A stretch of DNA of 64,000 bases, taken from positions 855,536-919,535 of the forward strand of contig NW_018407840.1 in NCBI RefSeq assembly GCF_002113885.1, read 5' to 3'. The position numbers were made by a program, and so were the translations under genes. The notes beneath the pieces are model-generated. The model was not told the DNA's origin and did no database searches. It saw only the letters and a list, made by a program, of their open reading frames with translations. This stretch comes from Mizuhopecten yessoensis. Its lineage: Eukaryota. Positions 5,501-64,000 of this stretch are shown in pieces. The first letter of the stretch is position 1; each line of letters opens with the position of its first letter.

Positions 5501-8500
5501 TAAATCCATTCTGAAAATGTAAGTTGTCATTAGTGCCTTGTAAACTGTTTGATTTTGTGCAATAACTTTTTCACCAAAAAATACTAATTCATGATGTAGT
5601 AAATGTATACTGGATAATATTACTTGATTACCAATCTGTCCAGTTTTGTTTTAAATTTACGGATTTACCTTACATAGTTTATATATAAAACTGCTGTAGA
5701 AATATTTGAATAGTACTTAACTCATTCATCCCTGAAATTTCAAAATGAACTATTCCAACCTTTGAATTTGAAGAGTTCAAACAGGTCTTCAGGGGAGGAT
5801 GAGTTAATGAAGTAATGATACTACATTTACAAAATGTCAATAGATAATTTTGTTTGCCTACCAAATACACCAGTTCCAAAGACTGTTTTCAGATGGTAAT
5901 GTTGATAAATTTGAATATTCATGTACCTGTATGCATGCTATTGGAGTTTAAAATAACATAATAGATGTTAATAAGACGGATATGTTTATTTGATGAATCT
6001 TATAATTTCAAAATTTTGTGATGTGCATCTGCTGTTCATATATGATATCATAAGTTAAAATTCAAGAACACCTTGCTTTTTATAACACGGAATAACTTTA
6101 TCTGATTTTTAGGAACACCTTGTTTTTTATAACACGGGATAACTTTATCTGATTTTCAGGAACACCTTGTTTTTTATAACACGGGATAACTTTATCTGAT
6201 TTTCAGGAACACCTTGTTTTTGTTTAACACCGGACATGGGTTGCTAGTTCACTCAGATGAACAAACTCCAGAGGGCCTTATGAGCACATTTGCTACAAAC
6301 ACTTTTGGACATTTTGTTCTGGTAAGCTACACATTCATAAATTGTTAATCCAAATAGTGTGTAAGTCCACTACCTACTCTATAAGTTACTTTTTGATCCA
6401 GTTATTTGTTTCGTAGTTACGCCCCATTTATGAAATCATTAGCAAAATTTTATCTGCATAATTCTTCCTACAATTTTCATCTGAACTTTGCGAAACTCCC
6501 CCGATATATTCACCATACTGTGAATTTGTGAGATTGCATTTGGTTTTGGAACATACTACTAAAAACTGGAATACATGCCTTTGGAGTAAAATAATAAAAA
6601 AAATCTCAAAAACAGCATCATAAGTAGCAAGAATTTTGGAAATTCAAAATAGAAATATAACCTTTGTTAATATTTCAGCTACTGTTTACAGGGAGAATTT
6701 TGCCCAGTCAAACTATCGCCCTTCGCCCATGAGATCAATTTTTACCCTGTTTTTAGCCCACCATCATCTGATGGTGGGCTATTCAAATCACCCTGCGTCC
6801 GTGGTCCGTCCGTAAACAATTCTTGTTATCTGTATTTCTCAAGAAGTACCAGAGGGATCTTTCTCAAATTTTATATGCAGGTTCCCCTTGGTCCTTAGCT
6901 GTGCAGGGCAACTTTTGAGACTGATCGGATACACAACATGGCCGACAGGCAGCCATCTTGGATTTTGATAGTGAAAGTTTGTTATCGCTATTTCTCGAGA
7001 AGTACTAGAGGGATCTTTCTCAAATTTTATATGTAGGTTCCACTTGGTCCTTAGCTGTGCAAGGTAACTTTTGAGACTGATCAGATAAACAACATAACCG
7101 ACAGGCAGCCATCTTGGATTTATATTTTGAAAGTTTGTTATCGCTATTTCTCAAGAAGTACGGGAGGGATCTTTCTCAAATTTTAAATGTAGGTTCCCCT
7201 TGGGCCTGAGCTGTGCAGGGCAACTTTTGAGACTGATCGGATACACAACATGGCCGACAGGCAGCCATCTTGGATTTTGATAGTGAAAGTTTGTTATCGC
7301 TATTTCTAGGGAAGTATTAGAGGGATCTTTCTCAAATTTTATATGTAGGTTCCCCTTAGTCCTTAGCTGTGCAGGGAAAGTTTTGAGACTGATCGAATAA
7401 ACAACATGGCCGACAGGCAGCCATCTTGGATTTTGATCGTGAAAGTTTGTTATCGCTATTTCTCAAGAAGTACCAGAGGGATCTTTCTCAAATTTTATGT
7501 GTATATTCCCCTTGGTCCTGAGCTTTACAGTGCAACTTTTGAGACTGATCGGATAAACAACATGGCCGACAGGCAGTCATCTTGGATTTTGATAGTGTGG
7601 GTTTGTTACTGCTATTTCTCCGGTAGAACTAGAGGGATCTTTCTCAAATTTTGTATGTAGGTTCCACTTGTTCCTTTACTGTGCATGGAAACTTTTGAGA
7701 CTGATCGGATAAACAACATGGCCAACAGGCAGCCATCTTGGATTTTGATCGTGAAAGTTTGTTATCGCTATTTCTCAAGAAGTACCAGAGGGATCTTTCT
7801 CAAATTTTATATGTAGGTTCCCCTGGGGCCTAAGCTGTGCAGGGCAATTTTAGAGACTGATCGGATAAACAACATGGCCAACAGGCAGCCATCTTGGATT
7901 TTGATATTGAAAGTTTGTTATCGCTATTTCTCAAGAAGTACCAGAGGGATCTTTCTCAAATTCTATATGTAGGTTCCCCTTGGTCCTAGCTGTGCATGGC
8001 AATTTTAGAGACTGATCGGATAAACAACATGGCCGACAGGCAGCCATCTTTGATTTTGATAGTGAAAGTTTGTTATCGCTATTTACCGGGAAGTCAGGAG
8101 GGATCTTTCTCAAATTTTAAATGTAGGTTCCCCTTGATCCCTCGTTGTGTATGTTATATTTTGAGACTGATCATAAAAACAAAATGGATTAAAAGAAGAA
8201 CTAAACAGATCTTTCTCATATTGCAATGATCGATTCTATTTCTTTCACATTAAGTACTGTACTAGTCAATATGTGAAATGACAAACTCACTTTGAAGGTT
8301 GGCTTTCATACACATCAGTATTAAGTTTAGATCAAAAGTTACCTCAAGGTACATTTACTGTTAACATGACTCGATCAAACAGATTAGAGGAAAGAAGAGA
8401 AAAGGTCAAACTAACAAAGAACTAATGAAGATGGTACAAAGGTGGGCGCCAAGATCCCTCTGGGATCTCTTGTTATTTCTGTCTTCACTATTCATTACTA

Positions 8501-11500
8501 TGGATATTATAGTGTTTACTTATACATGTATTAGCTGTAATGATAAATTTGCCCTCATTACGTATACGGAGGGTGAAAAAGATGAAAAGTTAACTGCAGC
8601 AAAAATTTCCCAGTATAGAGTATTACGATAGAAGTTATCACCTAATGAGGGTATGATTTGTTGTCTAAGTGTAGTCAGGTTTTATCAGGTAAAAGAACTG
8701 GAAGACATCCTCGGAGGTACACAGTCTTCACAGATCATCTGGACATCGTCTGTGGCTGGTGTTCGTTCAGCCTTTAACCCCCGCGACATACAGGCCAGAA
8801 ATGGGTAAGTACAGGACTCAAACAGCATTAGTGGCCGTGAGTGGTATCAATTCAGACTGTGATTATTCCCACAAGTTCACAAATCATAAACTTGGACCCA
8901 GTTTAAAAAATGTCATCAAATTTCAGACTAAGCTTCTTATCTATATTATTACTTGAAGATAAACATTTTAACTTTGTACAAAAATATTCAACAAAACCAA
9001 CAACATCATTAGAAAAATCCCTTTAGGATATAAGATACATACAGTAGTGTACATGTACACTGTACAGGTGTTTTTATTCCTGGATCCGTATTCATGAAAC
9101 CGTTCTCATGCTCAAGCATGGAATCTGTGCTCAAACCAACTTTCTGGTAGCTCGCTTAGATCATGTGAAACGATCAAAAAGTCAAAGGTAAACATTGAAA
9201 ACAGTATTTGGCTATAAGTCTCTTCAAAACGTTTCCAAATCATTGACAAAATAAGATTTATTTATTGAGTTATAACCAGAACAAGAAATTAGGCTTGAGC
9301 TCAAAATCCATGCTTGAGCATGAAAATTGGTTCATAAATACGGGCCCAGGTCAGTAATTTTCCGTGGATTTGCTAAAATGGTCAGTTTCATGGGATTTAT
9401 TTTTTGCAGTTGTGTGCAAGGATTAATATGCTATTAATTTTGTGGGTTGTTTCTTTTTGAGTATTTTTTTTTGAAAATCAAAGAAAATTACCAAGTAATT
9501 CATCATATATGCTTTATGTGACCCCTATCTCCTTTTCAAATAAGCGCCACACTGAAAATCTATCAGATATCTTTTATGAATGCTGCTGTTATTTATTTGT
9601 TAGTTGATTAAGGACACATTATAAATTACAACAGAATACAAGTACGATAACACTAATTAGGCAAGGTTATGTGCATTAAAATGTTTCTAGAAGGGAATTT
9701 TTGAACCCTTAACCATGTGGTCAAGTAGTTCAGGCGTCTGACCATCTACGATCACTAGCCCTCCACCATATGGTCTCGAAACACAAACAAACCAAACCAA
9801 CTCTGAATTGCAGGTATAATGTGAACCTGGCCCATATTACCAGGTAATATCCCTGATATACAGTACTGTACCAATACTATATTTTGTATTTCAGTAAGGA
9901 TCCCTACGGATCTACTAAATGTGTGATTGATACTACAAGTTTGGTGCTGAATGAAAAATTGAAAAGAAAGGTAAAGTTACTCTAAAATTATCTGTTTGTC
10001 ACTTAATTTGAATTTTTTTTTTCTGAACTGATAAACATACTCCATAAAGTTATCATTGTTTTTAGGAAGGAGGTTATGAGAAAATAATAAATTTTCAAGG
10101 ATTTTATGACATAAGCTAGCAAAGTGAGGGTACAAATGTATTACATTTGTCCAGTGGAATTATTTCTTGACCAAATCAGATTTTGTTTGCCTTTGCGATA
10201 CCTTGGACAAATTTGAATGTAGATGTGATCAGTCTAAAGTCATGGTCACTGTTGCTAAAGATAGACATCTTTAATGTCAAGGTCACTGTCATGTTCAAGA
10301 TAAACGTTTCTAAAGTCAAGTTCACTGTTGTTCAAGATAGACACTTCTAATGTCAAGGTCATTGTTGCTCAAGATAGACATTTTTAAAGTCAAGGTCACT
10401 GTTGCGTAGATAGAATTTCACAATCATGCTCTTTTACATTTCAACAGTGTTGTTTCTTTGGTAATTTTACAGTGTTTCGTTCTTTGGAAAATAAATCATT
10501 TTTGTTGAATTTGGGATGATATTGATAAAGTTTTTATTTTGTTTTGTAGAATATCTACTCCCACACAACATGTCCCGGACTAGTCCTGACCAATATGACC
10601 AATGGTATCTTAGCATCGTGGATCTGGTGGCTCATTCTCCCCTTCCTGTATATTGTGAGTTTGTAACTCTGAATAACTGAGATCTGAAATATGTAATCCA
10701 GCCACTTGTTTCCTTATCCTATATATTTTTAGGGTTAAGTAACTCATAACTACACTGCTAAGCAAGTTGATATATACAACAGATTTACGAGCAAGCTGAC
10801 CACTTGTCCACTTGGTCAGTCTCACAGGCTTTTCCTGACACACTGACCACAGGGGTGACAGGTTACTAAGTATACTGTAAACTGTCTAGAGTAGCAGTGT
10901 TCTACTTTTCCCTTTTTTTAGCTCACCTGGCACGAAGTGCCAAGTGAGCTTATGCCGTGGCGCGGCGTCCGTCGTCCTCGTCCGTCAACTTTTCCTTTAA
11001 ACAACTTCTTCTGAAGAACGGACAGGCCTAGAGTCATGATATTTGGCTGAAAGCTTCGTTGATAGGAGCCCTACAAAGTTTGAGAACGAAAATGACCTTG
11101 ACCTGTTTTCAAGGTCACAGGGGTCAAATATGTCAAAAACTTCAAACGACTTCTTCTGAAGAACTAAAAGGTATAGAATCTTCATATTTGGCTGATGGCT
11201 TCCTGGGATGGAGCCCAACAAAGTTTGAGAATGAAAATTACCTTGACCTACTTTCAAGGTTATATGAGGCAGATATGTCAAACACTTCAAACAACTTCTT
11301 CTGAAGAACTGAAAGGTATAGAATCTTTATATTTGGCTGGTGGCTTCCTGGGATAGAGCCCAACAAAGTTTGAGAATGAAAATTAGTTTGACCTACTTTC
11401 AAGGTCACAGGGGTCANNNNNNNNNNNNNNNNNAATGAAAATGACCTCAACCTACTTTAGAGGTCACAGAGGTCAACAACATTTTAATGGATTTGTTCTT

Positions 11501-19616: not shown

Positions 19617-22600
19617 AGTAAGTTTCCAAGAGAATTAATATTGTCGACAATAATCAGAGCTGGTATTTCATATTATATTTTGAATTATTTCTATACTCGT
19701 ATGTCCTGTTTATATTATTAGATTTATTCTCTTTGCATGGATTTAGGGTTCAACACGCCCCCTTGAAGGCAGTATAATCACACTAAATTCTAACCACTTG
19801 ATAAGTCCTAATTAAAGACCCCAAATCGAATATTAGAATTCAGATATAAGAATTTTGATTTATTGAACTTGTGTTTTAGCTATTAAAATGGTGTATAGCG
19901 ACCTTAACTTGGTCAATAAGGCATTGGGCTAATGTAACGTCTTAATCAAAATAGTTCACAATAATTTAACATGTAAATCATTTTGCAACCTAAATAAATG
20001 CAAAGAAATGACGTATTATCTAAAGATCATTTATATACATTAGTCATGCGCAGCTTAATTTTTCCGTTTTTCCTTATTCTAGTCGCAAATCTAGTTTGGT
20101 TGATTTTGCCATACAGAAGCAGTAAAATCATAGTTAACTTCCCCTGTAATATGTTTCAGCAAAATGACAATAAGAAATCGAAAGCTAAGTAACCGAGATT
20201 TATAAATGAACTTCAGATGATTTGAGTTAGATTTGTTATAAAATTTTATAAGTCTATTTTGTCTAGCATCGATAAGTAAACATTTTCTTCACGGTAACAT
20301 GAACTTACATGTTTACATTTATATACCGGTTAAACACGTCACTGTAACATTTAATTTCCCTATAGCTATTGTTGTTCCAAAGAATCTCAAACAAATCGAT
20401 TAGAAGCGGTATACTTCTACAGCTAGTAAAAGAGAACTCAATCTCCGCTTAACCTTTGTTTCTAAGAGGACTTTTCGATAGTATGTCATTTCACTACTGC
20501 ACATATAATGAGGTTAATGGTACCAAATGCCATAAGATTGATATAAACTCACATCACATGATTGTAGATGTGAACCAGTTTCTAAGTACTCGTTCAGTTT
20601 AAACAGTGTTTTATTCAATAATCAAGCAAGGTCATTATTTACATGCAATTTCAGAGGCCTTGACATAAGATATTATGTCAGGGCCTCTGAAATTGCATGT
20701 AATATCTGTGCCAGTATTCAACAGGTAGGAGGCGAATAATATCTTTTATTGTGACAGACACTGAAATAACCCAGTTTTAAATGGATGATTTTGACAACCT
20801 TAACGTAAATTTTGTTTTTCATAAGTGGCTTTAATCATACCTGTTTTTGGATTGCTGTTTGGCTTCATCTGCTCAGGTAGGTTATCAATATGTACTTGAT
20901 TAACATTCAACGTCTGTTGCAATTGTAGTTGCTGCTTTTTCCCATGTGTTTTTGCAATCTGAAATAATAAGTGTAAATCAATCTGAATATTTTCAAAGAC
21001 ATGTCTGATAACATACAATTAATTTAACCCTGTTAACTAACCAAAGTTTTTTTTTAATCATGAATACAATGGAATATCGATATCCAGATAGACAGGAAGT
21101 CGGTCAAGAAATGATGTCGTATTTTTACCAGTAGTCCTCTTCTTGAGATTCATAAAAGTAAGGATTTTTACGCACACGCCCTTCTGTATCAACAGTAGTT
21201 CAAATCAATTTGGAATTCCAAACTAATCGTTCCTAGCAACAACGAAGAGTTCAGAAGGACGACATAACTGGACGGTTCAACGAAATTCATTTCTATTGCC
21301 AAATGTTAAAGGTGCAGCTCGATGTGTGCATCTTTGGTTCATCTTTTATTGAAACGCATCTGTTTAGGCAGTTATAATTCATTCACATTTTATAAACAGA
21401 TACGATGTCTACCATTGTTTTGATTTGGAACAGTTATTATTATATGTGTTAACCGTTGTTCTGATTTGGAACAGTTATTATTATATATGTTAACCGTTGT
21501 TCTGATTTGGAACAGTTATTATTATGTATGTTAACCGTTGTTCTGATTTGGAACAGTTATTATAATATATGTCTACCATTGTTCTGATTTGGAACAGTTC
21601 TTATTATATATGTTTACCATTGGTCTGATTTGGAACAGTTATTATTATATATGTTTACCGTTGTTCTGATTTGGAACAGTTATTATTATATATGTTAACC
21701 GTTGTTCTGATTTCGAACAGTTATTATAATATACGTCTACCATTGTTCTGATTTGGAACAGTTAATATTATATATGTTTACCGTTGTTTTGATTAGGAAC
21801 AGTTAGTATTATATATGTTTACCATTGGTCTGATTTGGAACAGTTATTATTATGTATGTTAACCGTTGTTCTGATTTGGAACAGTTATCATTATATATGT
21901 TAACTGTTGTTCTGATTTGGAACAGTTATTATTATATGTGTTTACCATTGTTATGATTTGGAACAGTTATTATTATATGTGTCTACCATTGTTCTGATTT
22001 TGAACAGTTATTATTATATATGTTTACCGTTGTTTTGATTTGGAACAGTTATTATTATATATGTTTACCGTTGTTCTGATTTGGAACAGTTATTATAATA
22101 TGTGTCTACCATTGTTCTGATTTGGAACAGTTATTATTATATATGTTTACCGTTGTTTTGATTTGGAACAGTTATTATAATATACGTCTACCATTGTTCT
22201 GATTTGGAACAGTTAATATTATATATGTTTACCGTTGTTTTGATTAGGAACAGTTAGTATTATATATGTTTACCATTACCCTTTAGTATCTACAGCTGGT
22301 CCGCAGTGCTTTGCCTGTTCATCAATTTCTGCGCTGGAGTTTTGTGATCATTCTACACAGTGTGCAACAGGAGAGGTAACGTTATTGTACCATCTTGTTT
22401 TCCATAATGTTCACATTACATGCGGTTGAAACGCCGTTTTCTCCTGGAAAATCCTTTTTTTTTCATCTGTTCCATTCTTCCATTTCTGACATCTTTTTTT
22501 GTTTTTATTGAGTCATCTGTTCACACTGTTCTCGTCTTTTGTACCGATTTTGGTTTTGGAATTTTCCATGTGAATCTGAGGACGTGGAACATTTAATTTT

Positions 22601-25600
22601 CTGCTTTGCTTTTCCGCAGTTAACAATGTGATATAGCCTCTGTTAATCAACCAAAATGTTTGTATGGTCAGAAGAGTAAACGAAATATCGAGCGGAACGT
22701 TAAACTAATGGTATTAAAATATGCCAATGGTGAATTTGATATATGTTGGAGGTTTGGGAGGTGGCTAACAAAACGTGACAAGTTGTGAAGGGGTTTAACT
22801 AGTAGTACGTCATAGTATCATCGGAGCCCGTATTCAGGAAACCGTTCTCATGCTCAAGAATGATTTCTGTGCTCAGGCCGACTTTCTTGTAACTCACTTA
22901 AATAATTGACCACGGTCAAAATGTTAAGTGTGAACGTTGAAACAGTAAAAGGCTCAAAGTCTTTCCAATTTTCTTGCATATCATTGACAAAAAGACAAGA
23001 TATGATTTTTTTACAATTTATCACTGTCAAAATGAATTGGGCTTGGACACATTATCTTGGTTTGAGCACGAGAATGGTCTCATGAATATATACAGATTAA
23101 GGCTTCTTTTTACAGATTCTTTAAACCTAATATGACATTGTCAGTAGTTTGGAATTTCCCCCGACACAAATTCAAATAACCTAATTTCTACGTTGGAAAT
23201 GCAAACAATAATAACAAAATATAACTAGATAATTACACACAATTTTGTTTATGCTGCGCCCCAGTTCACTACCAAATAATGCATAAATGTTGTCAAACAA
23301 TATTAACGATCATTCGGGAAGTATTGGAAGACACACTTTGATTAGTCAAAGTAATGAAATTATTATTCATGCACAACATAGCGTCAACAAGCTCGGAACT
23401 AAAAAAGAGAAGCAATTACAACAAATTCAGTAAAATGAGAAATATAACGCGAGTCTCCACAGAAAAGATTAAAACAATAACCAAAACAACTCAATCAAGA
23501 AATTACAAAACAAAAATCACCAAACATATTTTTAGGGACAAATTTCGGAGTGCATTTGAGTGGTGAAATAAAATGTAAGGATCGGAGGCAAAAACTGGGG
23601 TAGTTCGGGGTACTTGAAACATACAGGGTTTGGCCCTTAATACCGTAAACAGTTGTATCTTGATTCTTGTCGTTGTAAGATGTTTGCAAGTGATCAGTTT
23701 TACTTTGGTTGATATAGATTATATATCATCAAATTTGACTTGACTTTTTGTTTGTATCTCAGAAATGCTACATACATAAGACACGTACACACAACGGTCA
23801 CGACCAGTACACGTCCGGGTGTATCAGCAACCAGGTATGTCACGTATATAATGAGGGTGAACAGTGTTTATATTGAACTGTTTTCTTCTGGCATTCATAG
23901 TCAATATAAATGCGAACTGGAACGAGACAAGTTCCATAAAGTCCACAAGCGCTTCATTTTGAACTTGTTACGATCTAGTTGACATGCATAGCTTCTTTAG
24001 TCTACATACCAAAAAACAGAGATAGTCTACATCTCAATATATTGATAATCTACACACTTATAAAACAATTAAATAGATAATGTTTCAGAAATTTTTCAGT
24101 CCGGGAACTCGCTCAATATTTTTGGTAAGTGTGTGCGTTATTGTTTATAATAGCTTGAATGTACCAAATGTTACATTTTTGAACGAGGTTGATTTATTTG
24201 CGAAGTTGTTTGGGTACACCTTTTTCTTGTTTGACTCTTTCGTTCGAACATTTGTGGTTATTTTTGTTTTCACAGAGTTGCTCCCTGGGCCAAACTTTTC
24301 ATGGATTATCGCCATACGGACAGGTGACTTGTGTAGAGTGTTGTGACGGAGACATGTGTAACAACCAGGGCTGTGGGGATACGGGTTCGTAATTTTATTC
24401 GTTATGTTTTTAAAAACATGAATTTCTTCTTATGTCGTTCATTAAAGGACAACAGCTTTTTTTTCAGGCTCAATTGTTAATCAACCTGTTAATTAAAATA
24501 TTTCGCCTCTGCGTTTGGTTCAAATCTGTATGATAAATTTCGGTAGGTTGGGTAATGGCGCCCTTTGACTTTGCGCTCTAAATTACGAACATTCAGCCGC
24601 TATGTAGCACAATAGCAGGTGCTTAAACTACAAGCAGTTTGCATTAAAATCTAGGTGTCAGGCTGTGAGATTTTTTTCTATTTATCAATAAACAATCTTA
24701 TTATTCAAACAATTTAATGGAATGTATTTTATATTGTCTAGGAATTCGACGCAACAAATTGTTACGAGGCATTTGGCGATAAATATATTTAATAGCGTCC
24801 AAGATTGACGACCTCAGATTATTTCTTTCTTCTGCTCAGAGATTAACTCACTGTATTTATATCATGATATATTTATTTTCATCCTCCTCGAACGTGTTTG
24901 ACGTAAAACGTTCTCTGACGAAATATTAATTCTTGTTTAAGGATAGTCTTTGGCATTGATTAAAAGGAAATGAAATTCAAATGATATTTTCATGCGGTTA
25001 ATACTTGATTCTTACATCCTGAGAAAACACGTTGATTTATCTTGGACTGCTTTTCATGTTACTTATACAATCGTTTTAAATATTGCCTAGATCATGTCCT
25101 TAATTCTTATATTAATCGAAACTTAAATCCACGGTTGTTTCAATGTTTGCGATTTTACACACACCTCAGTAATCACCCTAATAAACAATGACCTTAGTCT
25201 ATGATGGTCTGTATTAATTATTTCTACTATGTATCCTTAATTTTTGGTCTGTGGGAGATTTACGGGTTTGTCGCATGACATCTCAACTCGAGCAAATTTT
25301 TAAAAGCCATACTCTGGTTTTATATTAGTGTATGTTAGTTTAGAGACCGTAACGTCTTAAATTGATTGGATGCAGTTAAAACCAGGTAAGATGTAAATTT
25401 GGTCTCAATGAGATTTTACATGTTCGTCACATGGCGTCTCCGATCATGCAAATTCTTAAAAGCCATACTCTTGTCTTATAATAGGATATATGAGTTTAGA
25501 TAACGAAACGTCTTCAACAGAATGAATGCAGTTTAATCCAGGTCAGATGTTTACAAACTGATCAATTGACGAGTCTTCTATCATTAAAGTTGAGATTTTT

Positions 25601-28600
25601 ACTGGATAATATCATAACATATAATCTGTTAAGGTTTGAAACACTTCTTGCTTTTGTTAAAAATGTGGATTGCTTCACACTGTTTGGGACTTGCATCACA
25701 GTATACTGTTGTTTGCTCTTGTATAGGACCACCACCCCGCGAATCCCGGGGACCATACTGTTACCAATGTCAGAACATGCCGGGCACAAGCTACTGTGAC
25801 ACACTCACTCTTTGTAGCCGAAATCAGGTAAGCATGTCAAATTTACAAGTACGTAAGACACCATTCCTGAAATAAATGATACACTGATTACAAACAATAA
25901 CACAAGACTGACTGCTTGGCTCTTTGCTTAATTGGGTTCTTCAGACGCCTGATGAAGCCAAAGAAGGCAAATATGCCTAACGGTCAGTCTTTTGTACTTG
26001 TTATTTTTCCTTCGCAAGAACTTGTTTCTTAATTATATACCATTATATGCATTTGTTTTACAATTTCGGATTTAAGTTATATTTCTTAAATCTGAACTTG
26101 AAATTTCGGCAAATTACAAAAGACCGACACTGATTGTATTATTAGTGCTTTACTTAAAAAGCCCCAATTACCAAAGCATTTTAGTAAATAAAATCAGGTT
26201 GTTGGTTCCGTTTTCTATGTAAATGTGTTCGTGTTATTTCTCGGCCACAACATTAGAATCATGTAAAGATTTCAATAAACGCTTTTATAATTTGTCAGCT
26301 ACATTGTATATTTCACGCTGACTAATCCGCGTGTAAAAATACAGCCAACTATTACTCCTCTACTGGCAAGAATGTATGATGTATATACTGTAGAGTTTTT
26401 TGAATTTTGCGGGACTAATATTTCGCGGTTGCCCCTCTCAGATCTAGTTCGCGGTAATTAAACATCGTGCTACATGGCTAGGTAAAAACATCGCGTTCAC
26501 GGGGGTACTTTTGTATTTGGGTGATGGGGTGGTTTGTTGGTTGGTTGTTTACATCATATCAACAGCTAAAGTCATTTCATGACGTGCCTCCATGTGTGTT
26601 GTGTATGTGTGCATATGTGTGTGTGTGCCGGGGGAAGGGTATATTGGTGTGTGATGGGTTGTTTTTTAAGTAAAATGCGTTATTGAATTGTTGTATTATC
26701 TTCATTATTGAGGTTAACGTTTTAAATATATCTTCCTTTGTGTCTCTAAACATATATTCACAGATATTATAATTCATGGTATTAATATTCGCGGGGTAGT
26801 ACATTTCGCGCTATCTTCGGTGACCGCGGATATAGCATAATTAAACCCGCCGCAAATATTACGAACTATACATTAGATAAACGGACAATATTTATTTAGC
26901 CTTTAACTGTTTGTCGTTATTTTTTTTACTGAACATCGGGATATATGTTTGAAGCCGACATTGGGAGCAATATTCGCAAAAATTCCAATCATTCATATGG
27001 CAAGACCGTGATATGTCAGTCCTTGTAGCGGTAATAAACTCATTTTGAACAAAAAAGCGAATATCAAGTATCTGCTTTCGCTGTTTCGTAGTTCCGTAGT
27101 GGTTTAGGAATCACCAACTTAATCATTTACTTTATATGTTATTACTAAGTTTTTGGGCTTTCAGCTTTAAAATTTGAAGTTTAACATTAGTGCCAACTGT
27201 CTTTTAGAGTCATACATACATACATGACAAATGCTTCAAAGGGTATGTTTGACAGGTTTCATGGCATACAAGAGCGCTACATGCTTCTGCTTTTGACAAC
27301 CGGAAGTTTACAAGCCAAACCGATGAAGCGGGACGGGAACACCCCTTAATTTGACCCCATATAAATCTGCCAATTAAAATTTACTTAAACTGTTCATTTT
27401 TCAAAGTTAAACATTTGTAGATTTCTTTCAATACAAAGTCTGTCAAAATCACACATTTAAATTACTCTGATACACTGCATTGAACCAGAACAAATGTTAG
27501 GTAGGGATTACAATCGTATGACACTTGCTGATTGGCTTATTTAGCTGTGAGGGTCGTTTAGGAATACCTCAAAGGCATTAGTCCTTGAAACATATTTTAT
27601 TTTTGTGTAACATACAGTTGATACAGATTCACTAGTATAATCGTAATATGATCCCAGAGTTTATTGATAATACATGTTTGTAAAATATGTTTTGTAAGCG
27701 TTACATGTGTTTTATGCTTCCATCCGTTACCTTTTTTAGGCTTGTACGATTGACGAAACGTTTTCATCTGGGCACCACTTTGCAAGCGGTTGTCGACCTA
27801 AAGGAGTAAGTGTTTCTATACTTCGTTATCTGTTTATACACATGACTCGTTTATTGTTACACAAGAGACAAAAGAAAAAAAAGCATCTAACACTTTTTAG
27901 GTGAGATTGTATGACCAATTTTGTTGTTTGTATAGTTTAACCTACAGAGAGGTTCATCAAAAACAAACGGAAACATGCTACCGCTACAATATCTTCAAGT
28001 GAAACGTTGACTTCAGCAGAACACATAAATTATCTTTTCTCGATGGTTGATGCTGTTTTGTTTTAATATCATAGTCAAATAAAGTCATTGTCAAATCCGT
28101 GTATGCAGGTACAAACGTAACTGTGCTGAATATATGATATGCCTGGCTCAGGATTTTCTTGCCTGGATGATTGATCTTTCTATTTTATTACATTTTCGTC
28201 ATTAAGGTTTGAGTTTAATTTTTTTTAACGAGATTTTCATAGCCAAGGTTATTTAAGGACGTGCCTCCATGTGTGTATGTGTGCTTTAGAAAGAGTTTGT
28301 TGGTGTATCTGCCTCCTTGAGATAGCACAGACCTGATGCCAACTTTTGAGTGTTACCTTACATTTGGAATCTTACCTTTTCTCTTCTTTATAAACAACTT
28401 TCTTCTTCCTAATGTTTCACTTGACAATGCCTCACTTTTGGCCTTTAGTTAAGCGTTCGGCCTTGTGAGGAGGGCTTCGGGTTCTGTCCCCTGGCCGAGA
28501 CATAACAGAATCTGTCAAAATGGTAGTTTCTACTCCTGTTTTACGCTCAGCAATTAATTGGAGTGGGACGACTGGTTCGCCCGTTGTCAGTAAAATGTGA

Positions 28601-31600
28601 CCGGGTGGGGTGTCCTGCTGGGTGTCTTCGGAAGCATGTTTCAGTGAGGTAGCACTATAAAGTCGGTATCAGTTCCGCGCTATCACAAGGAGACAAACAC
28701 GAACATATCGCAGCCTCCCAAAACACACACGCATACACTACACGCATGCATCTTGCACACAGGGGAGGCCGTCCTAAAATGACCATAGCTGTCGATAGGA
28801 CGTAAAAAAAATACAAAACCAAACGTTAACACTTATGTCAAGAGTAAGGTATTGCCAATCAAGAAGGTTGTTTGGAAGAAGAGAGAATTTATAAAGATCC
28901 CAAATATTGCGATGGGTGCAGCAGATTTAGCTGGTCATTGTTTTGTCCCCAAGTGGAGGGCACACATGCAAAACCCTTTTCTGCAGGGAGTTCCCACATT
29001 AGACGCCTCTTACAACATACAGTGGGTAACAACACGTGTATTGTTCTAAATCCCCGACATCAGCATTAAGTAATGCATCGAAAGCCCGAATAGCTTATAT
29101 GAAAGATAATTGGTAATTTGCAAAGTCACATCAATTTTTTTTATCCACTTCTTCGAGTTAATTGATTACAAGAGTATCAATTTATATTAGTCTTCTTTTA
29201 CCTCGACAGGAGTGTTCACACGTTGGCCCAGTGGAAGGTAGAGATGTTCATAACTTTATTGGATCTTCACGACCCTGTCATAAGTGTTGTTCTGACGACT
29301 TCTGTAATCTAGAGTGTCAGAGTCAGAATCAACAAGGTGTGTATGTGTGCCTTTAAAATATGATATTTATAAAAATCCAGCACCATTTTGTTGTCGTATT
29401 GATTTCTATGTCGCTATCTTCACTACAAACTCAGTGGTACAATGGCACAAGTTGTTGTTTTGATCTAGATCTCCATGTTCTCCAAAGTGGCATATAAAAG
29501 CTGTTGCAAACCTTCATTAGTGGATCTACAATGTAACAATAACTGATCTATTGTCTAGTTGTCGACTCCTGATAGTAACTGAAGTTGAGACGAGGCAGAA
29601 AAGATGTCCAAAACAAGATGTCAATACCACACTGGGGAAAGATAACCATTGAAGATTGCCTATCCATGAAGTAATGGGTAAACAAGCCCTTCACCTATAT
29701 AAAACAGAAACCNCATAGTAAAAAAATATAGGGGCCCCCTCCAGAAAAGAACATGCATGCAATGATAATATACAAATATTTAAATTTTAAAAAGGAAGTG
29801 CATGTGCGATTTGTTTTAATGCTCTTCTTGATTTTTAAAAAATACAGTCACATAAAACTATCAGCTTATGTTTTAAAAGAACACCTTTATTTGGTGATTT
29901 TGTAATCAAAATAGAGATTTAGATATTTAAATCTCATATAATAAAACTTAATATGACTCCCTCTCTCTCTATATATAACATGAAATAACTAAGCTTAGTA
30001 GCTTAATGTTAGTTATTTAGGATGGTTATTACTTTTTTGTTACTCTAGGACTCTAAACTTTATTTATTAGGCTAACCTCTCATTCATTTATCGTTTAAGG
30101 TCTGTGGTAGGCCTATGGGTTTACGTCTTATCATCGTTTCGACAAAAGTTGTCATGATTTTAGTAACCAATATTGTTGCTTTTACCCCGCTAAAGTGACA
30201 TATCATTTACCTTCGTATCTAAGTCCGTGGTATGACGCAGGATTCAGGCTACGCTGGCCGTTGCGAGTCTGTGTAGTTTGCCAATTAATACGCTGCCAAC
30301 CATTGTATTTCTGTCGTGAATCCATGCAACATGTTTGCCTTTTAACGTTTGCACATTTTTTTCTACATGACAATTCCAATGATAATCGCAGTAATATTCG
30401 CGAAAAAGTCTAATTAAGCCTACCGGAATCGCCTCAACCTCCGCCGCCATTTTGACATCTGGGGCATGCGCAATACATCGGTAAACGGAATCATCCATTG
30501 TGACAAGAGGGATAAGAGGAAATCTTTTGTACTTAAGTGCGAAGGTACATAATGTAAAAAGATTACTACATAATGACAAAAGACGTAGTTTTGCGTTAAG
30601 TGCTTTTAGTACTTAAGTGCAAAAGATTTGCACCTAAGTGAAAAAGTTTTTGCCATTGTGTGATTTTTTGCCATTATGTCCAGTTTTTTTCACTTCAGTG
30701 TAAATCTTTTGCAGGAAGTGCAAAAGTTTTTGCACTTAAGTAGTTTATGTATTTTATCCTAAAACGGCCGCCCATACTGAAACACTGTTAACCTGTTATT
30801 GAATGTATTTCAAATCCGGGACACAAATAACGTATTTCCGGCATATTATGATACAGGGGTGGTATCTTGGAGTGCTTGGAGTCAATGGGGTACGTGTTCG
30901 GCTAATACCTGTGGTGGTCGCGGACATCAGACTCGGAACCGACATTGCACTAGTGTTGCAGGAGGTTGTAACGGTGTATCTACTGGAGAACGCAATTGTT
31001 CCCGTGGTCTCTGTTCAGGTACACATTTTAAAACTTATCCTGATAGGTAAATATCGCATCATTTTGACAGTCTATACCGACATTCACCTAATAACCACTT
31101 TTCCCGCAAACTTGAGTGAGCATTTCATAACCTTACCATAGAATGTGACAATTTCAATGACGTTGACAACAAAACAACAGGGTTGTGGTATAGAACCTTT
31201 TTCTCGAACGAGACACAATTGTGTGATATCATCAGTGGTAGAAGTAGGAAGAATTTGTCAAGGCTTTTTGATTATTTCATGCTGTTACATTTATTGAACT
31301 GAACATTGTTTTTTGAAGTGAAATTTGTATTCGCTTATAAGAGTTGAGTATGCTTCGCCATTTATGCAATTTAGATTGTCTCAACTAGAGTTTTCATCTC
31401 GTAACCTGATCAAAATACTATTTGTCACATACAATTTATAACTCGCACTCTCTCCTTTTATTATTTTTCTGATGTAAAAAACGAAGTGCAACAAATATGT
31501 TAGTTATCTCGACCAAGCTGCTGACCATCACTCAGAATGCATCCTGAATATATTCAAAAAAGAAAAGCCGATAACTACAATTTTCACTTTTTAAGGTTGT

Positions 31601-32197
31601 GCTGAGCTGTACAACAGTGGGCAGCGTACATCAGGTGTTTACACAATAGCTCCGGCTGGACACCAACCTCTAAATGTCGTCTGCAATATGGGAGACGGAG
31701 GGGGATGGACGGTACTTCAACATAGACTCCAGGGATCCGTTAGCTTCAATCGAAGCTGGACTGATTACGTCACTGGTTTCGGTGACCTACGTGGCGATTT
31801 CTGGCTTGGATTGGAATATATTCACATGCTGACTTCGCGGGGGGTCCAGATCATCATTGATATGGTGGGAAAGCATGGATACTTGATACGGTACAGCTAC
31901 GATCACTTTGAGGTGAAGAATGCTAGTACATCGTACGAATTATTGGTTGCCAATGACAACTCTGTGAATTGCACATCATACTCCCGGCTTATGTATAATA
32001 ACGGATCAAAATTCTCCACGCCTGATAAACAGGGAAAGCACGGTTGTGCGTCTCACGGTTCCGGATGGTGGTTCAAAGAATGTTCATATTTCAACATAAA
32101 CGGAGTGATAGGTGTTGATGATAATAATTATGGAATGGCGGCGCTTTGTCACCCCGACATTGTTTCATTGAAGGAAACAATAATGAAAATAAGATAA
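19617..32197 (+). CDS. Secreted fibrinogen-related (FReD) protein: signal peptide + 2 Ly6/uPAR-like three-finger domains + TSP1 + fibrinogen C-terminal domain, ~459 aa
   Basis: Exons 19617 (A of ATG), 20826-20876, 22287(or 22296)-22375, 23763-23834, 24276-24384, 25727-25827, 27740-27805, 29210-29336, 30857-31018, 31596-32197; phases all compatible. The two Cys-rich domains start CxxC and end CCDGDMCN / CCSDDFCN. TSP1: WSAWSQWGTCS..CGGRGHQTRNRHC. FReD: CAELYNSG...GVYTI...GGGWTVLQHR...FNRSWTDYVTGFGDLRGDFWLGLEYIH...GSGWWFKEC. The 5' exons are less certain than the 3' exons. Confidence 0.8.
20639..20702. repeat. Near-perfect 30-bp-arm palindrome
   Basis: TTACATGCAATTTCAGAGGCCTTGACATAA-GATA-TTATGTCAGGGCCTCTGAAATTGCATGTAA, with one T/G mismatch. 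Confidence 0.9.
21405..22277. repeat. 41-bp minisatellite, ~21 copies
   Basis: ACCGTTGTTCTGATTTGGAACAGTTATTATTATATATGTTT; ends directly at the acceptor of the 22287/22296 exon. Confidence 0.95.
22823..23090. mobile_element. Diverged copy of the 9079-9350 MITE
   Basis: Shares GCCCGTATTCA-GAAACCGTTCTCATGCTCAAG, the internal CATTGACAAAA segment and the TTGAGCA..GAAT right end. Confidence 0.65.
28365..28825 (+). mobile_element. tRNA-derived SINE (Meta-domain-like), near full length
   Basis: tRNA-like GGCCTTTAGTTAAGCG...GGGTTCTGTCCCCTGGCCG, central AAAATGGTAG...CTCAGCA...TGTCAGTAAAATGTGACCGGGTGGGG, tail AAATGACCATAGCTGTCGATAGGACGTAAAA. The tail recurs at ~12320, ~15325, ~36345 and, inverted, at ~26540, ~28210, ~39340. 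Confidence 0.7.
30857..31018 (+). CDS. Thrombospondin type-1 repeat exon (phase 1-1)
   Basis: WSAWSQW-CS..CG.G.Q.R.R.C...C.G...E.NC...C pattern; 162-nt exon between atacag| and |gtacac. Confidence 0.88.
31596..32197 (+). CDS. Fibrinogen C-terminal (FReD) domain, encoded on a single terminal exon
   Basis: ORF 31688-32197 extends upstream in frame to the acceptor ttttcactttttaag|gt at 31595; canonical FReD motifs GGWTVLQHR, FGDLRGDFWLGLE and GWWF..C. Confidence 0.93.
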
Positions 32198-32982: not shown

Positions 32983-33586
32983 GTATTCCATCCGTAATCA
33001 TACCAGTGTATTCCATCCGTGGTCATACCAGTGTATTCCATCCGTAGTCATACCAGTGTATTCCATCCGTGCTCATACCAGTGTATTCCATCTGTGGTCA
33101 TACCAGTGTATTCCATACGTGGTCATACCAGTGTATTCCATCTGCGGTCATACCAGTGTATTCCATCCGTAGTAATACCAGTGTATTCCATCCGTGGTCA
33201 TACCGGTGTATTCAATCCGTGGTCATACCAGTGTATTACATCCGTGGTCATACCAGTGTATTCTATCCGTGGTCATACCAGTGTATTCCGTCCGTGGTCA
33301 TACCAGTGTATTCCATCCGTAGTAATACCAGTGTATTCCATCCGTGGTCATACAAGTGTATTCCATCTGTGGTCATACCAGTGTATTCCATCCGTTGTCA
33401 TACCAGTGTATTCCATCCGTGCTCATACCAGTGTATTCCATCTGTGGTCATACCAGTGTATTCCATACGTGGTCATACCAGTGTATTCCATCCGTAGTAA
33501 TACCAGTGTATTCCATCCGTGGTCTTACCAGTGTTTTCCATCCGTGGTCATACCAGTGTATTCAATCCGTGGTCATACCAGTGTAC
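32983..33586. repeat. 25-bp minisatellite, ~24 copies
   Basis: TACCAGTGTATTCCATCCGTGGTCA; accounts for the repetitive ORFs at 32829-33634. Confidence 0.95.
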
Positions 33587-34191
33587 GGCATTTGTTGTAG
33601 GATCATCCGTTACCTCAAACGAAAAAAAAGATGATAACAATTTGATGACTGTATATCAAAAACAAATTAACTATGGCAATAGCTAGGTGACACTGTTTGT
33701 TGAAAATATTTTTATCGAAAAGTGACACCTTTTTTATGCACACACAAAGGCTTGCATATAACAACAACCAATACAATAACAACCATTTTCATGCACTCTT
33801 TATGTGTTCGGGTGGTGACTTTAATAGGAAACCGTCAGAAAATGCTTCAAATTTCCATAATATTTCAACTACATGTAATCATAAAGTTTAAAATGCTTTT
33901 AGCGCACGAGACTAGCCAGATCACCAGAATGAGAAACTGTTTCGTATTGTGTAAAATAAATATCTCGTATCCTTTGCAGTCCCTTTTTACATTCAAACAG
34001 CTGTGCTATTTCTTAACCGTATCTTTAAAACCTAGCACCCCTATTAAGATAATCCTCGATATTCCACGGTGTATGTGCTCTCTGCACCCCTGACATAGGT
34101 CTTAGCAAAACTGAAGGCACGCTGTTAGCTATTCGGGTGGTGTCAGGTTCGTCGAGAATGTATTTAGGCCAACCTCATATACCCGACCGAA

Positions 34192-36792: not shown

Positions 36793-39700
36793 ATGAATGT
36801 TTTTAACCGTTTCAAGAAACGTCTGTTCAATAAGAACAGGATGAAAAAAACGAACAAATTAGATCAAGATGTGACGTGTTCTCCAAGCAATGCAGACAAT
36901 GAACACCTCACAGCTGATGAAAATGTTTCTACGGGCAATACCACAGAATACAACGATTTGTCAAGCAGCAACAAAGAATATAACATCAACGTATTGCCAG
37001 ATGAAACTGAAGCTAAACAACTCACCACTAAGCGTAACATCAATGCTTGGTCTAAAGTCAATAATGATCCTGGACATTATAAGAACATTTTGTCAAAGGA
37101 AGAGGTCAAAAGAATCGAGGCTTTGATGCTTGATCTTAATTCCTATACCAGAAGTGATGGCACTGAAAACAGATTATGCCTCAAAGAAACGAACATCAAT
37201 ACCTTGAGTGCAAACAAACACATTTGCGAAAATGCCGAAAGGGAATTGAACACAATATGTGTTCATGCACCGCACCAATGGCAGTTACAGGCTGTAATCA
37301 CCGAAAAGGGCGGCTTCTTCCAAACAAAACACTCTGACGTCAGACTCACGTTTCAACAAAACTCAGTTGATATAAATACAACTATTTCAGGGTCAGTTTT
37401 ACTTGACATTCCGTTTCTCAGAAGTAAATTTGAACTACAAAAAACAGACATTATAGTGGCACCCACCGTTGAATACCATTTGCATGAAGTAACACACCTA
37501 AAGTTGCATGCTTGTTTAGAACTACCCCATTGTATAGGCAGTCGAAACGTACACAAAATGCAAGTATCGTGGTGTGTAAATGTGCGTGGAAAGGTCACAA
37601 AAAACTCAAATTTCATTTATTGAAAAACCAGCACAGGAAACCCAGCGGATTCCGGATATTTACTGGACAAAGGGCACGAGAAGGAATACAATAAACGTAT
37701 TTGCTAAGCATTTCTGTGTTATTCTGTGTACTGCGTGCGAAGAAGATGTCGAGTTCAATATTCGAGCATTGCTATTTCACAAATTTGACAATATTAACCC
37801 ATTGACCCTCAGGCTCCACCTTCACCTGGGCGGACCCCTGTCAAAGATAAGAGACTTCGAACAGGTATTGTTGTCAACAATTGTCAGATATATTGTGATT
37901 AAAAGATTGATAATATCATTTATTTATGGGAATATGATACAAATATGTAGGTTTTAATATAATGGATTGTACATCGCTGAATAGTCACAAAGAAACGTTT
38001 TTGTTATTATTATTACAACGGCTGATTCAAAAGATGTTAATTCGTAAAGATTCTAAAACAGCTTACTTAAGGATCCCTGTACCATTACCAAAAACTAATT
38101 ATTGATTTTAAAAAATCCCGGCATGAATATACCTTTGATAAATTATTTCTGAAAAGAAGCATACCTTGCAGGACATTTATGACAGAAAAAATAAAGATGA
38201 AGCAAATACCAACAATGTTCTGAATGTAAAAATATCACGGAGCAAGTCTAGCATTCGAACTCAGGACCTCAGTTCATTGTGCTGTCCTTCCCAGCAACTG
38301 AGCTTCCTGGTCAACGAAAGTATAAAAGCCCAGTTGCGCTACATCCAAACGAAACTTAGGAGATGTTACTATATGTACGAGAAACTAAAGTGAAATGGTC
38401 TAGTATTTTGCCTGCAGTGGCAGAGGGATTCATACGTAAATAATCCCAAGATAATTGACATCAAGTAGATAGATCCATGTCAATATGGATAGAAAAACGG
38501 AAACTGCGTCAGCAAAATAGAAGGATATAGTTAACCTGCATATAAAACGAATACATATTAAAGTTTAGCCAATCTTATTTAATTTAAGTACATTAATGCA
38601 TAAAATGTTTCAAATTTCTATGAGTTTCGTCATTCATTTTTTATGATGAATATTGAATAAGAAGATGTTTCAATGATTTAGGCAACGATTGAAAAGATGA
38701 AGAGGGAAAACCTGATTTTCATCGAAGAAACAGACCTCAATCTTATCCCAAGATTTCAAGGTACCCTCAGATTTCGCTTGGAATTGCTAGAAATCGCCTA
38801 TGGAAAATGGGAGCATGTGAAGCGAGAAAGCACGAATCTTGTCTATGAAAGCCAACAGGTAAAGTAGAAGTCATTACATGTCGGAGTATGTAACTTATAT
38901 TCTAAAATTAGATAGATTTGTATATACATCACATGCTTTGAATAAGTTATTCTGATTTTCGTCGTCCCGCGGAAATGTCCATGTGGCAAATAAGCTCAAA
39001 CGGAGCATTTTCTTCCCTAATTTTAATCTTGTATTTAAAGGGTCAATTACTAAAGCAATTGTTAATCCCCGTTGATGTAGAAAGATCATATTTCCGTTGG
39101 TTTCTGGCCCGGGGGATTTAATCGGTTTGACCTCAAGGAAGGTTAATAATAAATGTGTAATTGTGTATCCTTTGTGTTATATACATTGTGTAAGTAGATA
39201 ATGTGTACTTGTGTACTACCTTAATGTATCCTTTGTGTTATATACATTGTGTAAGTAGATAATGTGTAATTGTGTACTACCTTAATGTATCCTTTGTGTT
39301 ATATACATTGTGTAAGTAGATACTGTGTACTTGTTTGATTGTTTGTTTATTTGGGATTTAACATCCTCGCAACAGCAAGGGTCATATGAGGAAAAATGGT
39401 CGAAAATGTAGCAAGGCCCAAGTTGGCACCCGTCCTTTATCATTAGGTTGAATGTGATATATACAAATGGGCATTGTTTGTACAGAACTTTGATGTCAGA
39501 CGCTTAGCCAAGTGTGGCAATGAACACGTCATAAATGATGGGGTGAAATTGTTGCTAAAACGTGTGACGGTTTCGACGAACACCTGCTGTTTCTGCACTG
39601 ACATCATACATGTTGGCAATGCTGAAAGCGAGGCTACGGCAACGACGACGATGCATGCAGTATTACCGGTGCCAGAAGTAAGGATAGTTAGAAAAGCTTT

Positions 39701-58733: not shown

Positions 58734-63727
<4,994 letters not shown>

Positions 63728-64000
63728 CCNNNNNNNNNNNCCCCACCCCCCACACACACACACACACACACTCCCCATATTTGTAGTAGTCCAGTTAAAC
63801 TATTGCTTTTAATCTTATTTTACTATTCAAAGATTAAACTAAAAACTTAAGTAAAATCCATTAATAATTTTTGAACTACAGAAGATATTTGATAAGTATA
63901 TAGCTATCACCTCTTTACTTTTTCTCTGATGAGCTGCGAACAGCCTACATGATATCCTAAAAATTTGATTTGAAAATAGGCCTTGGATTACTTACATTGA

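Follow-up and report, generated by a model that had tools for sequence, protein, structure and literature searches.

Characterised bivalve proteins with a fibrinogen-related domain (FReD) mostly bind pathogen-associated molecular patterns (PAMPs; PMC11741071). A 2026 survey of invertebrate three-finger proteins in Acta Naturae listed mollusc proteins combining a Ly6/uPAR (LU) domain with a fibrinogen-like or a C1q domain as "domain architectures not previously observed" (PMC13719153); for the LU + fibrinogen case, the survey gives one example gene and no TSP1 domain, exon structure, family analysis or function. Here, we analysed a 64,000-nucleotide stretch of the Mizuhopecten yessoensis genome (RefSeq assembly GCF_002113885.1, contig NW_018407840.1, positions 855,536 to 919,535, forward strand; contig C4513 of genome assembly G000), hereafter the window. 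It carries a gene for a protein with a signal peptide (SP), two Cys-rich domains of likely LU type (LU1 and LU2), a thrombospondin type 1 (TSP1) repeat and a FReD. This protein is an annotated, misnamed and uncharacterised scallop variant, with a TSP1 repeat, of the mollusc LU-FReD architecture whose first mention dates from 2026; it does not amount to a categorically new class. Like the mollusc LU + fibrinogen-like proteins of the survey (PMC13719153), it looks secreted and has its fibrinogen-like recognition domain C-terminal to LU domain(s); it differs from them in an added TSP1 exon and belongs to a TSP1 group found here only in scallops.

The window gene was also compared with other described systems. 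With AiFREP, CfFREP and the gastropod fibrinogen-related proteins (FREPs) of the immunoglobulin superfamily (IgSF), it shares a C-terminal FReD encoded largely in one exon, predicted secretion and lineage-specific expansion. The N-terminus of bivalve and gastropod FREPs is an IgSF region, a coiled coil or nothing, whereas that of the window protein is LU-LU-TSP1, and its FReD differs from theirs in a degenerate calcium loop and an extra Cys pair. One or two IgSF domains define gastropod FREPs, and Pfam gave no Ig-family match in any of the eight scallop family members. Nor was there a collagen-like or coiled-coil region of the ficolin or angiopoietin-like kind, residues 21-260 being filled by LU-LU-TSP1. 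The UniProt label, "Angiopoietin-related protein 7", reflects automatic transfer based on the FReD alone. The RefSeq label, "SCO-spondin-like", is misleading. SCO-spondin is a giant protein with many TSP1 repeats plus LDLa, VWD and EMI modules; the window protein resembles SCO-spondin/properdin-type proteins in having a TSP1 repeat with WxxWxxW and six Cys, whereas it is 459 amino acids (aa) long, with one such repeat and no other SCO-spondin module (Pfam).

Exon-by-exon translation showed that ten GT-AG-bounded coding segments on the + strand of the window (19617-32197) tile a 459-aa database protein exactly (Table 1). This protein is M. yessoensis P0152, identical to OWF45411.1, XP_021363874.1 and A0A210Q9K8, and the same product was obtained by two annotation pipelines (OWF45411.1 and XP_021363874.1). 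P0152 was reached stepwise. The FReD exon was searched against 1.84 billion representative proteins, and the third-best match, P0003 (462 aa, M. yessoensis RefSeq, 71 % FReD identity), was co-linear with every exon-like piece of the window (local tblastn) and led to P0152, which was then checked exon by exon. Three-frame translation of the + strand at 19.5-32.3 kb likewise contained two pieces starting with C-x2-C, two ending with CC-x4-CN, a WSAWSQW...CSANTCG piece and a 200-codon piece running up to the stop at 32195-32197. The intron phases were, in order, 1,1,0,0,1,0,0,1,1, with LU1 and LU2 each laid out as 1-0-0-1, the TSP1 exon as 1-1 and the FReD exon entered in phase 1. All ten phase-compatible exons proposed in the initial annotation were present and matched P0152 exactly, as were the shared 1-0-0-1 layout of the two Cys-rich domains and the symmetric TSP1 exon; the naming of the LU domains aside, the exon tiling upheld the order SP-LU-LU-TSP1-FReD. 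We regard this gene model and architecture as very probably correct.

Table 1 Coding segments of the window gene and an adjoining repeat (positions in the window)
Feature	Position	Strand	Evidence or remark
Final base of the 5' untranslated region exon and first base (A) of the start codon, which a phase-1 intron divides as A|TG	19617..19617	+	Donor gtaagt at 19618
Signal-peptide exon, residues 1-17 plus 1 base	20826..20876	+	Exact match to P0152 residues 2-17
Satellite, 41 bp x 21, 89 % match, 3' part of intron 2	21405..22274	.	Non-coding context, ends 12 bp before exon 3 acceptor
LU1 exon a, C-x2-C ... C ... C, phase-1 entry	22287..22375	+	Exact tiling of P0152
LU1 exon b, phase 0 to 0	23763..23834	+	Exact tiling of P0152
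LU1 exon c, C-x2-CC-x4-CN-x3-C, phase-1 exit	24276..24384	+	Tiling of P0152; weak BAMBI N-terminal domain match
LU2 exon a, linker PPPRESRGP then C-x2-C ..., phase-1 entry	25727..25827	+	Tiling of P0152
LU2 exon b, phase 0 to 0	27740..27805	+	Exact tiling of P0152
LU2 exon c, C-x2-CC-x4-CN-x2-C, phase-1 exit	29210..29336	+	Exact tiling of P0152
TSP1 repeat, single symmetric 1-1 exon, WSAWSQW, 6 Cys	30857..31018	+	Pfam TSP_1 25.0 bits
FReD, single last exon, stop codon 32195-32197	31596..32197	+	Pfam Fibrinogen_C 1.2e-42

The initiating methionine of P0152 is assembled from the A at 19617 and the TG at 20826-20827, which follows the acceptor at 20825. The start originally placed at 19617 was correct in that this base is the A of an intron-split ATG, and no in-frame ATG was found upstream of exon 2. 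In the M. yessoensis paralogue P0105, an intact ATG lies 5 nt inside the corresponding exon, so the split start codon appears specific to the window gene or its orthologue group. The split (19617^20826) is the least-supported junction of the gene. For the remaining architecture, a Logan contig from a related scallop (L001, run SRR19746222, 1465 nt) was informative: it is intron-free, for which reason it is taken as putative cDNA, and encodes a complete 473-aa SP-LU-LU-TSP1-FReD protein, P0157. In the FReD tree, P0157, the window protein and the Ylistrum orthologue of the latter formed one group (100/99 support). Because L001 is intron-free and orthologous, the orthologous junctions are joined in that contig. 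Sequencing runs X1-X14 contained 0.18-0.36 of the words sampled from 29100-32197, which is near the exon share and serves only as a hint.

The two C-terminal domains were assigned without difficulty. Pfam Fibrinogen_C (PF00147) matched 31595-32194 at 1.2e-42 (146.7 bits, cut-off 22; profile positions 5-219 of 221), and TSP_1 (PF00090) matched 30856-31017, exon 9 alone, with 25.0 bits against a cut-off of 21.6; the repeat carries WSAWSQW (WxxWxxW) and six Cys. FReDs in the PDB matched that of the window at 1e-31 to 1e-21, with angiopoietin-1, tenascin-R and ficolins at 1e-31 to 1e-27 and ~40 % identity; angiopoietin-1 and tenascin-R were the closest, ahead of the ficolins. Lectin-type FReDs (ficolin/tachylectin-5A-like) have an acidic D-x-D-x-D calcium loop beside the ligand pocket. 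The window orthologue group has D-K-Q-G-K-H at this position versus D-A-D-N-D in angiopoietin-1, retaining the first Asp alone, and the paralogues keep D-x-x-D. An additional Cys pair (C385 and C444) and a short segment after the NING motif are further features of the family FReD. Together, the degenerate loop, the extra Cys pair and the short post-NING segment make a classical calcium-dependent acetyl-group pocket doubtful, and ligand binding may differ from that of the classical lectins of this type.

The protein looks secreted on hydropathy. Its sole hydrophobic stretch was at N-terminal residues 1-20, with the highest Kyte-Doolittle window in the signal-peptide exon (20826-20876), and the highest 19-residue mean elsewhere was 0.86. 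The C-terminus (…ETIMKIR) is the usual end of a FReD, so the lack of a transmembrane segment or glycosylphosphatidylinositol (GPI) tail, as initially proposed, was borne out. The mature protein has 36 Cys, distributed as 12 + 12 + 6 + 6 across the domains; as the count is even in each, no Cys is left unpaired for covalent multimers.

The two 12-Cys domains, LU1 (residues 21-108) and LU2 (residues 109-206), are clear duplicates by alignment. All 12 cysteines were in register, profile-profile comparison (hhalign) gave a probability of 96.6 % (E 4.7e-10) and the exon layout was the same, in agreement with the domain duplication first suggested for them. The pattern C-x2-C-x8-C-x5-C-x5-C-x15-17-C-x5-C-...-C-x2-CC-x4-CN-x2-3-C was found in both domains of 8/8 homologues, and the 24 LU cysteines were invariant across the family. 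Both domains carry the LU cysteine framework of an N-terminal C-x2-C, at least 8-10 core Cys and a C-terminal CC-x4-CN.

Assignment to the Ly6/uPAR superfamily drew on weaker matches. Single Cys-rich exons were too short to score in Pfam, bar the weak BAMBI N-terminal match (24276-24384). UPAR_LY6 (PF00021) was sub-threshold in five of the eight family members (best 17.6 bits versus a cut-off of 24.8), and every sub-threshold Pfam match was to a three-finger family (UPAR_LY6, UPAR_LY6_2, Toxin_TOLIP, Activin_recp, BAMBI, CD59). For LU1 of P0157, these were Toxin_TOLIP (16.2 bits), UPAR_LY6_2 (Lypd6; 15.6 bits) and Activin_recp (14.6 bits), none of which reached its cut-off; E was 0.02-0.07, and each match covered the whole profile. 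Searched against 177,635 PDB sequences (E < 10), the same domain matched only LYPD6 (E 0.017), BMPR1A and GPIHBP1, all three-finger proteins. LYPD6 aligned over the full length of the domain with the Cys in register; LU2 alone had no PDB sequence match, and a two-sequence LU profile retrieved only PSCA (E 9.4). A profile hidden Markov model (HMM) of the family LU domain matched the three N-terminal domains of Dreissena polymorpha P0143 at 2.6e-15 to 2.8e-9, and P0143 itself passes the Pfam UPAR_LY6 cut-off (27.8 versus 24.8 bits), which is transitive evidence, modest in weight, of homology to accepted LU domains. As a lead only, the nearest Atlas clusters by language-model features were mollusc UPAR/Ly6 clusters (score 0.79). 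The 12-Cys domains therefore likely belong to the Ly6/uPAR (three-finger) superfamily. The three-finger identity given in the initial annotation stood in part: the cysteine framework, the link through P0143 and the uniformly three-finger character of the weak matches spoke for it, whereas the Pfam cut-off was missed.

LYPD6, which modulates a Wnt co-receptor, shares with the scallop domains the starting C-x2-C, the terminal C-x2-CC-x4-CN and 12 cysteines across a full-length alignment. It differs in that the match reaches only E 0.017 and in that the extra cysteines are placed differently, one of them after the CN motif. Phase-1 introns flank the scallop modules, as in known LU genes; the modules depart from the Ly6/uPAR family in having three exons per domain, no GPI anchor and fusion to other domains.

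We further investigated the occurrence of this architecture among available proteins. A word search with the N-terminal 263 residues of P0003 returned eight proteins, all from scallops; such word-based LU-LU searches, which returned the same scallop family only, are blind to distant relatives. Full-length co-linear homologues (54-85 % identity) occur in Mizuhopecten (three paralogues), Ylistrum balloti, Pecten maximus and Argopecten irradians. Across the word searches and the closest FReD proteins, no species other than scallops yielded the LU-LU-TSP1-FReD architecture. Relatives without TSP1 were sought with the LU HMM among the 150 closest FReD proteins, giving M. yessoensis P0105 (LU-LU-FReD), Argopecten P0073 (LU-FReD), Ylistrum P0106 (partial LU + FReD) and Dreissena polymorpha P0143 (LU x3-FReD). 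The TSP1-containing proteins formed a clade in the FReD tree (100/99) that spans the scallop genera in at least three or four orthologue groups. This clade was sister (91/93) to a scallop clade of TSP1-less LU-FReD proteins, with Dreissena placed unresolved on a long branch. The P0105 gene (contig C5302) is laid out like the window gene, with a signal-peptide exon of 17 residues, three exons for each LU domain and one FReD exon, but it has no TSP1 exon; its junction between LU2 exon c and the FReD is in phase 1, the very site occupied by the 1-1 TSP1 exon in the window gene. The simplest reading is that the TSP1 exon was gained once, in the scallop lineage, with the direction taken from a tree rooted at midpoint only. 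The phase-compatible exon-shuffling picture proposed for the gene holds, given the 1-0-0-1 and 1-1 phases and the paralogue joined in phase 1 without TSP1.

The cassette was also found in other genomic settings. LU and FReD exons adjoin on at least five contigs of the M. yessoensis genome. On C5493 (~542-595 kb), where the P0003 gene appears to be located, several LU + FReD exon sets lie on both strands together with an IgGFc_binding exon (556710-557426). Among 16 stretches upstream of IgGFc_binding exons, 15 had no sense-strand LU exons at E < 0.1. The remaining one, on C2595, had sense-strand LU exons of the family type, which start with GPxCxxC, end with C-x2-CC-x4-CN-x2-3-C and include an RGP linker; within the stretch concerned (L023, G000:C2595:263834-273833), exons resembling LU1a, LU1c, LU2a and LU2c with the 12-Cys signature lie at about 4874-8600, 1.5-5 kb upstream of the IgGFc_binding (PF17517) exon at C2595:273834-274742. 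This locus, read at the level of its exons only, is a probable LU-LU + IgGFc-binding-N gene. In Dreissena polymorpha, LOC127848505 (P0159/P0143) encodes LU x3-FReD isoforms, and the longer isoform has, after the LU domains and ahead of the FReD, an EGF-like match (21.3 bits, just under the cut-off of 21.5). Because of these isoforms, LU-FReD fusions can be said to exist outside scallops with other inserted modules. An SP + LU-LU exon cassette, with three exons per LU domain (phases 1-0-0-1), is the common basis of the bivalve family to which the window gene belongs, and various heads are joined C-terminally to it in phase 1.

The locus is an intact gene of this modular family for a secreted, disulfide-rich 459-aa protein, of which all but the LU fold is shown; outside the cell, this protein would most likely work in soluble form in recognition or bridging. 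Ligand binding would fall to the FReD as the head, as it does in bivalve FREPs and ficolins, with the TSP1 repeat serving as a spacer or as a second surface for binding; the LU pair would provide protein-protein contacts in place of the coiled-coil, collagen or IgSF stalks of other FReD proteins. As a whole, we consider this reading reasonably probable; its recognition role is evenly balanced. Several observations weigh against it. P0152 had no UPAR_LY6 match at E <= 1 in Pfam. AlphaFold2 models had a mean predicted local distance difference test (pLDDT) score of 36.4 for the whole protein and 39.1 for the LU-LU region of P0157, from a shallow 8-sequence alignment, and were poor even over the FReD, and Foldseek of these low-pLDDT models against the PDB gave no match at E <= 0.001 (GPIHBP1, PSCA and uPAR were among rows with E > 1 and were not counted as evidence). 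The degenerate calcium loop weakens a simple ficolin-like lectin model. The junctions of the window gene itself rest on annotation and homology, which matters most for the A|TG at 19617^20826. A search for literature naming the accessions, or Ly6 + FReD in scallops, found no paper and no functional study.

The missing Pfam match, the sub-threshold LU matches of the other family members, the unmatched LU2 and the low-confidence models would all be compatible with the 12-Cys modules adopting another small disulfide-rich fold, with only a CC-x4-CN-like motif in common with LU domains. We give this a slim chance, as the weak matches from three independent resources were every one to a three-finger family, full-length and with cysteines in register, the homology extends transitively to a Dreissena protein above the Pfam cut-off, and the module boundaries are in phase 1, as in known LU genes. 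The reliance of the junctions on annotation and homology could also mean that two genes were mis-joined in the annotation, one for a small secreted LU-LU protein and another for a TSP1-FReD protein. A 273-aa Pecten maximus model, P0004, consists of TSP1-FReD only, and introns of 1.5 kb and 0.6 kb precede the TSP1 and FReD exons, respectively. P0004, however, groups as an orthologue of the full-length P0156 and is probably a truncated model; all domains are joined in the intron-free orthologue contig, the phases are compatible, no start codon or signal peptide was found before the TSP1 or FReD exons, and the full architecture is kept in at least four named species plus several paralogues. A mis-join is accordingly very improbable.

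With the architecture accepted, its role is less settled. The main rival is that the same protein serves in development, matrix or shell, as an angiopoietin-like/LYPD6-like extracellular signalling modulator or a matrix component. Among solved structures, LU1 best matches LYPD6, and the FReD is closer to those of angiopoietin-1 and tenascin-R than to ficolins; the lectin-type calcium loop is degenerate, and our literature search found no immune study of any family member. Against this, the LYPD6 and angiopoietin matches are generic or weak, most characterised bivalve FReD proteins bind PAMPs (PMC11741071), and an expansion into several paralogues and tandem loci is more usual for recognition genes; we therefore consider a developmental or matrix role unlikely, and retain soluble recognition or bridging as the preferred reading. 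A bolder extension of that reading, which we find distinctly unlikely, would make the SP-LU-LU cassette a general adaptor of bivalve humoral immunity that, through interchangeable recognition heads, links the recognition of pathogens to a common downstream partner. Heads such as FReD, TSP1-FReD, IgGFc-binding N and C1q would be swapped by phase-1 exon shuffling, the LU pair would bind, for example, a complement-like or receptor component, and the window protein would be a single-chain ficolin/properdin-like initiator.

Other features of the window were also recorded. The translation of the satellite in intron 2 resembles an open frame directly upstream of exon 3, where the tblastn alignment overran the true acceptor. 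Downstream of the gene (33019-33600), long artificial open reading frames (ORFs) with a ~24-residue repeating unit (…VIPVYSIRGHTSVFHPWSYQCIPS…) suggest a ~72 bp minisatellite. A 276-codon ORF at 36793-37620 (+) had a sub-threshold ZU5 match (18.3 bits versus a cut-off of 21) and could represent an exon from an adjacent gene of the ZU5/death-domain type. Near the end of the window (62743-63423), ORFs of repeated MALIVV/GHGSNR units correspond to a short tandem repeat, beside an N run at 63730-63740.

The initial annotation had proposed an undescribed class of molecule, a claim weakened on three counts. The exact 459-aa protein has been present in GenBank, RefSeq and UniProt since the 2017 genome, with homologues annotated in four named scallop species; the mollusc LU + fibrinogen-like architecture is already listed in the 2026 survey (PMC13719153); and the window protein is one member of a modular family in which the LU-LU cassette occurs with and without TSP1 and before another head. 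The practical value of the locus is modest: its annotation is corrected, a scallop subfamily is defined and a hypothesis can be put to the test, but no new kind of system emerges. Both the public names and the precomputed Pfam annotation miss the LU domains, so that catalogues of domain architecture overlook these proteins. In molluscs, FReD proteins have expanded into a major family of recognition molecules, and the conserved LU-LU cassette ahead of the FReD and other heads suggests a shared, putative adaptor module.

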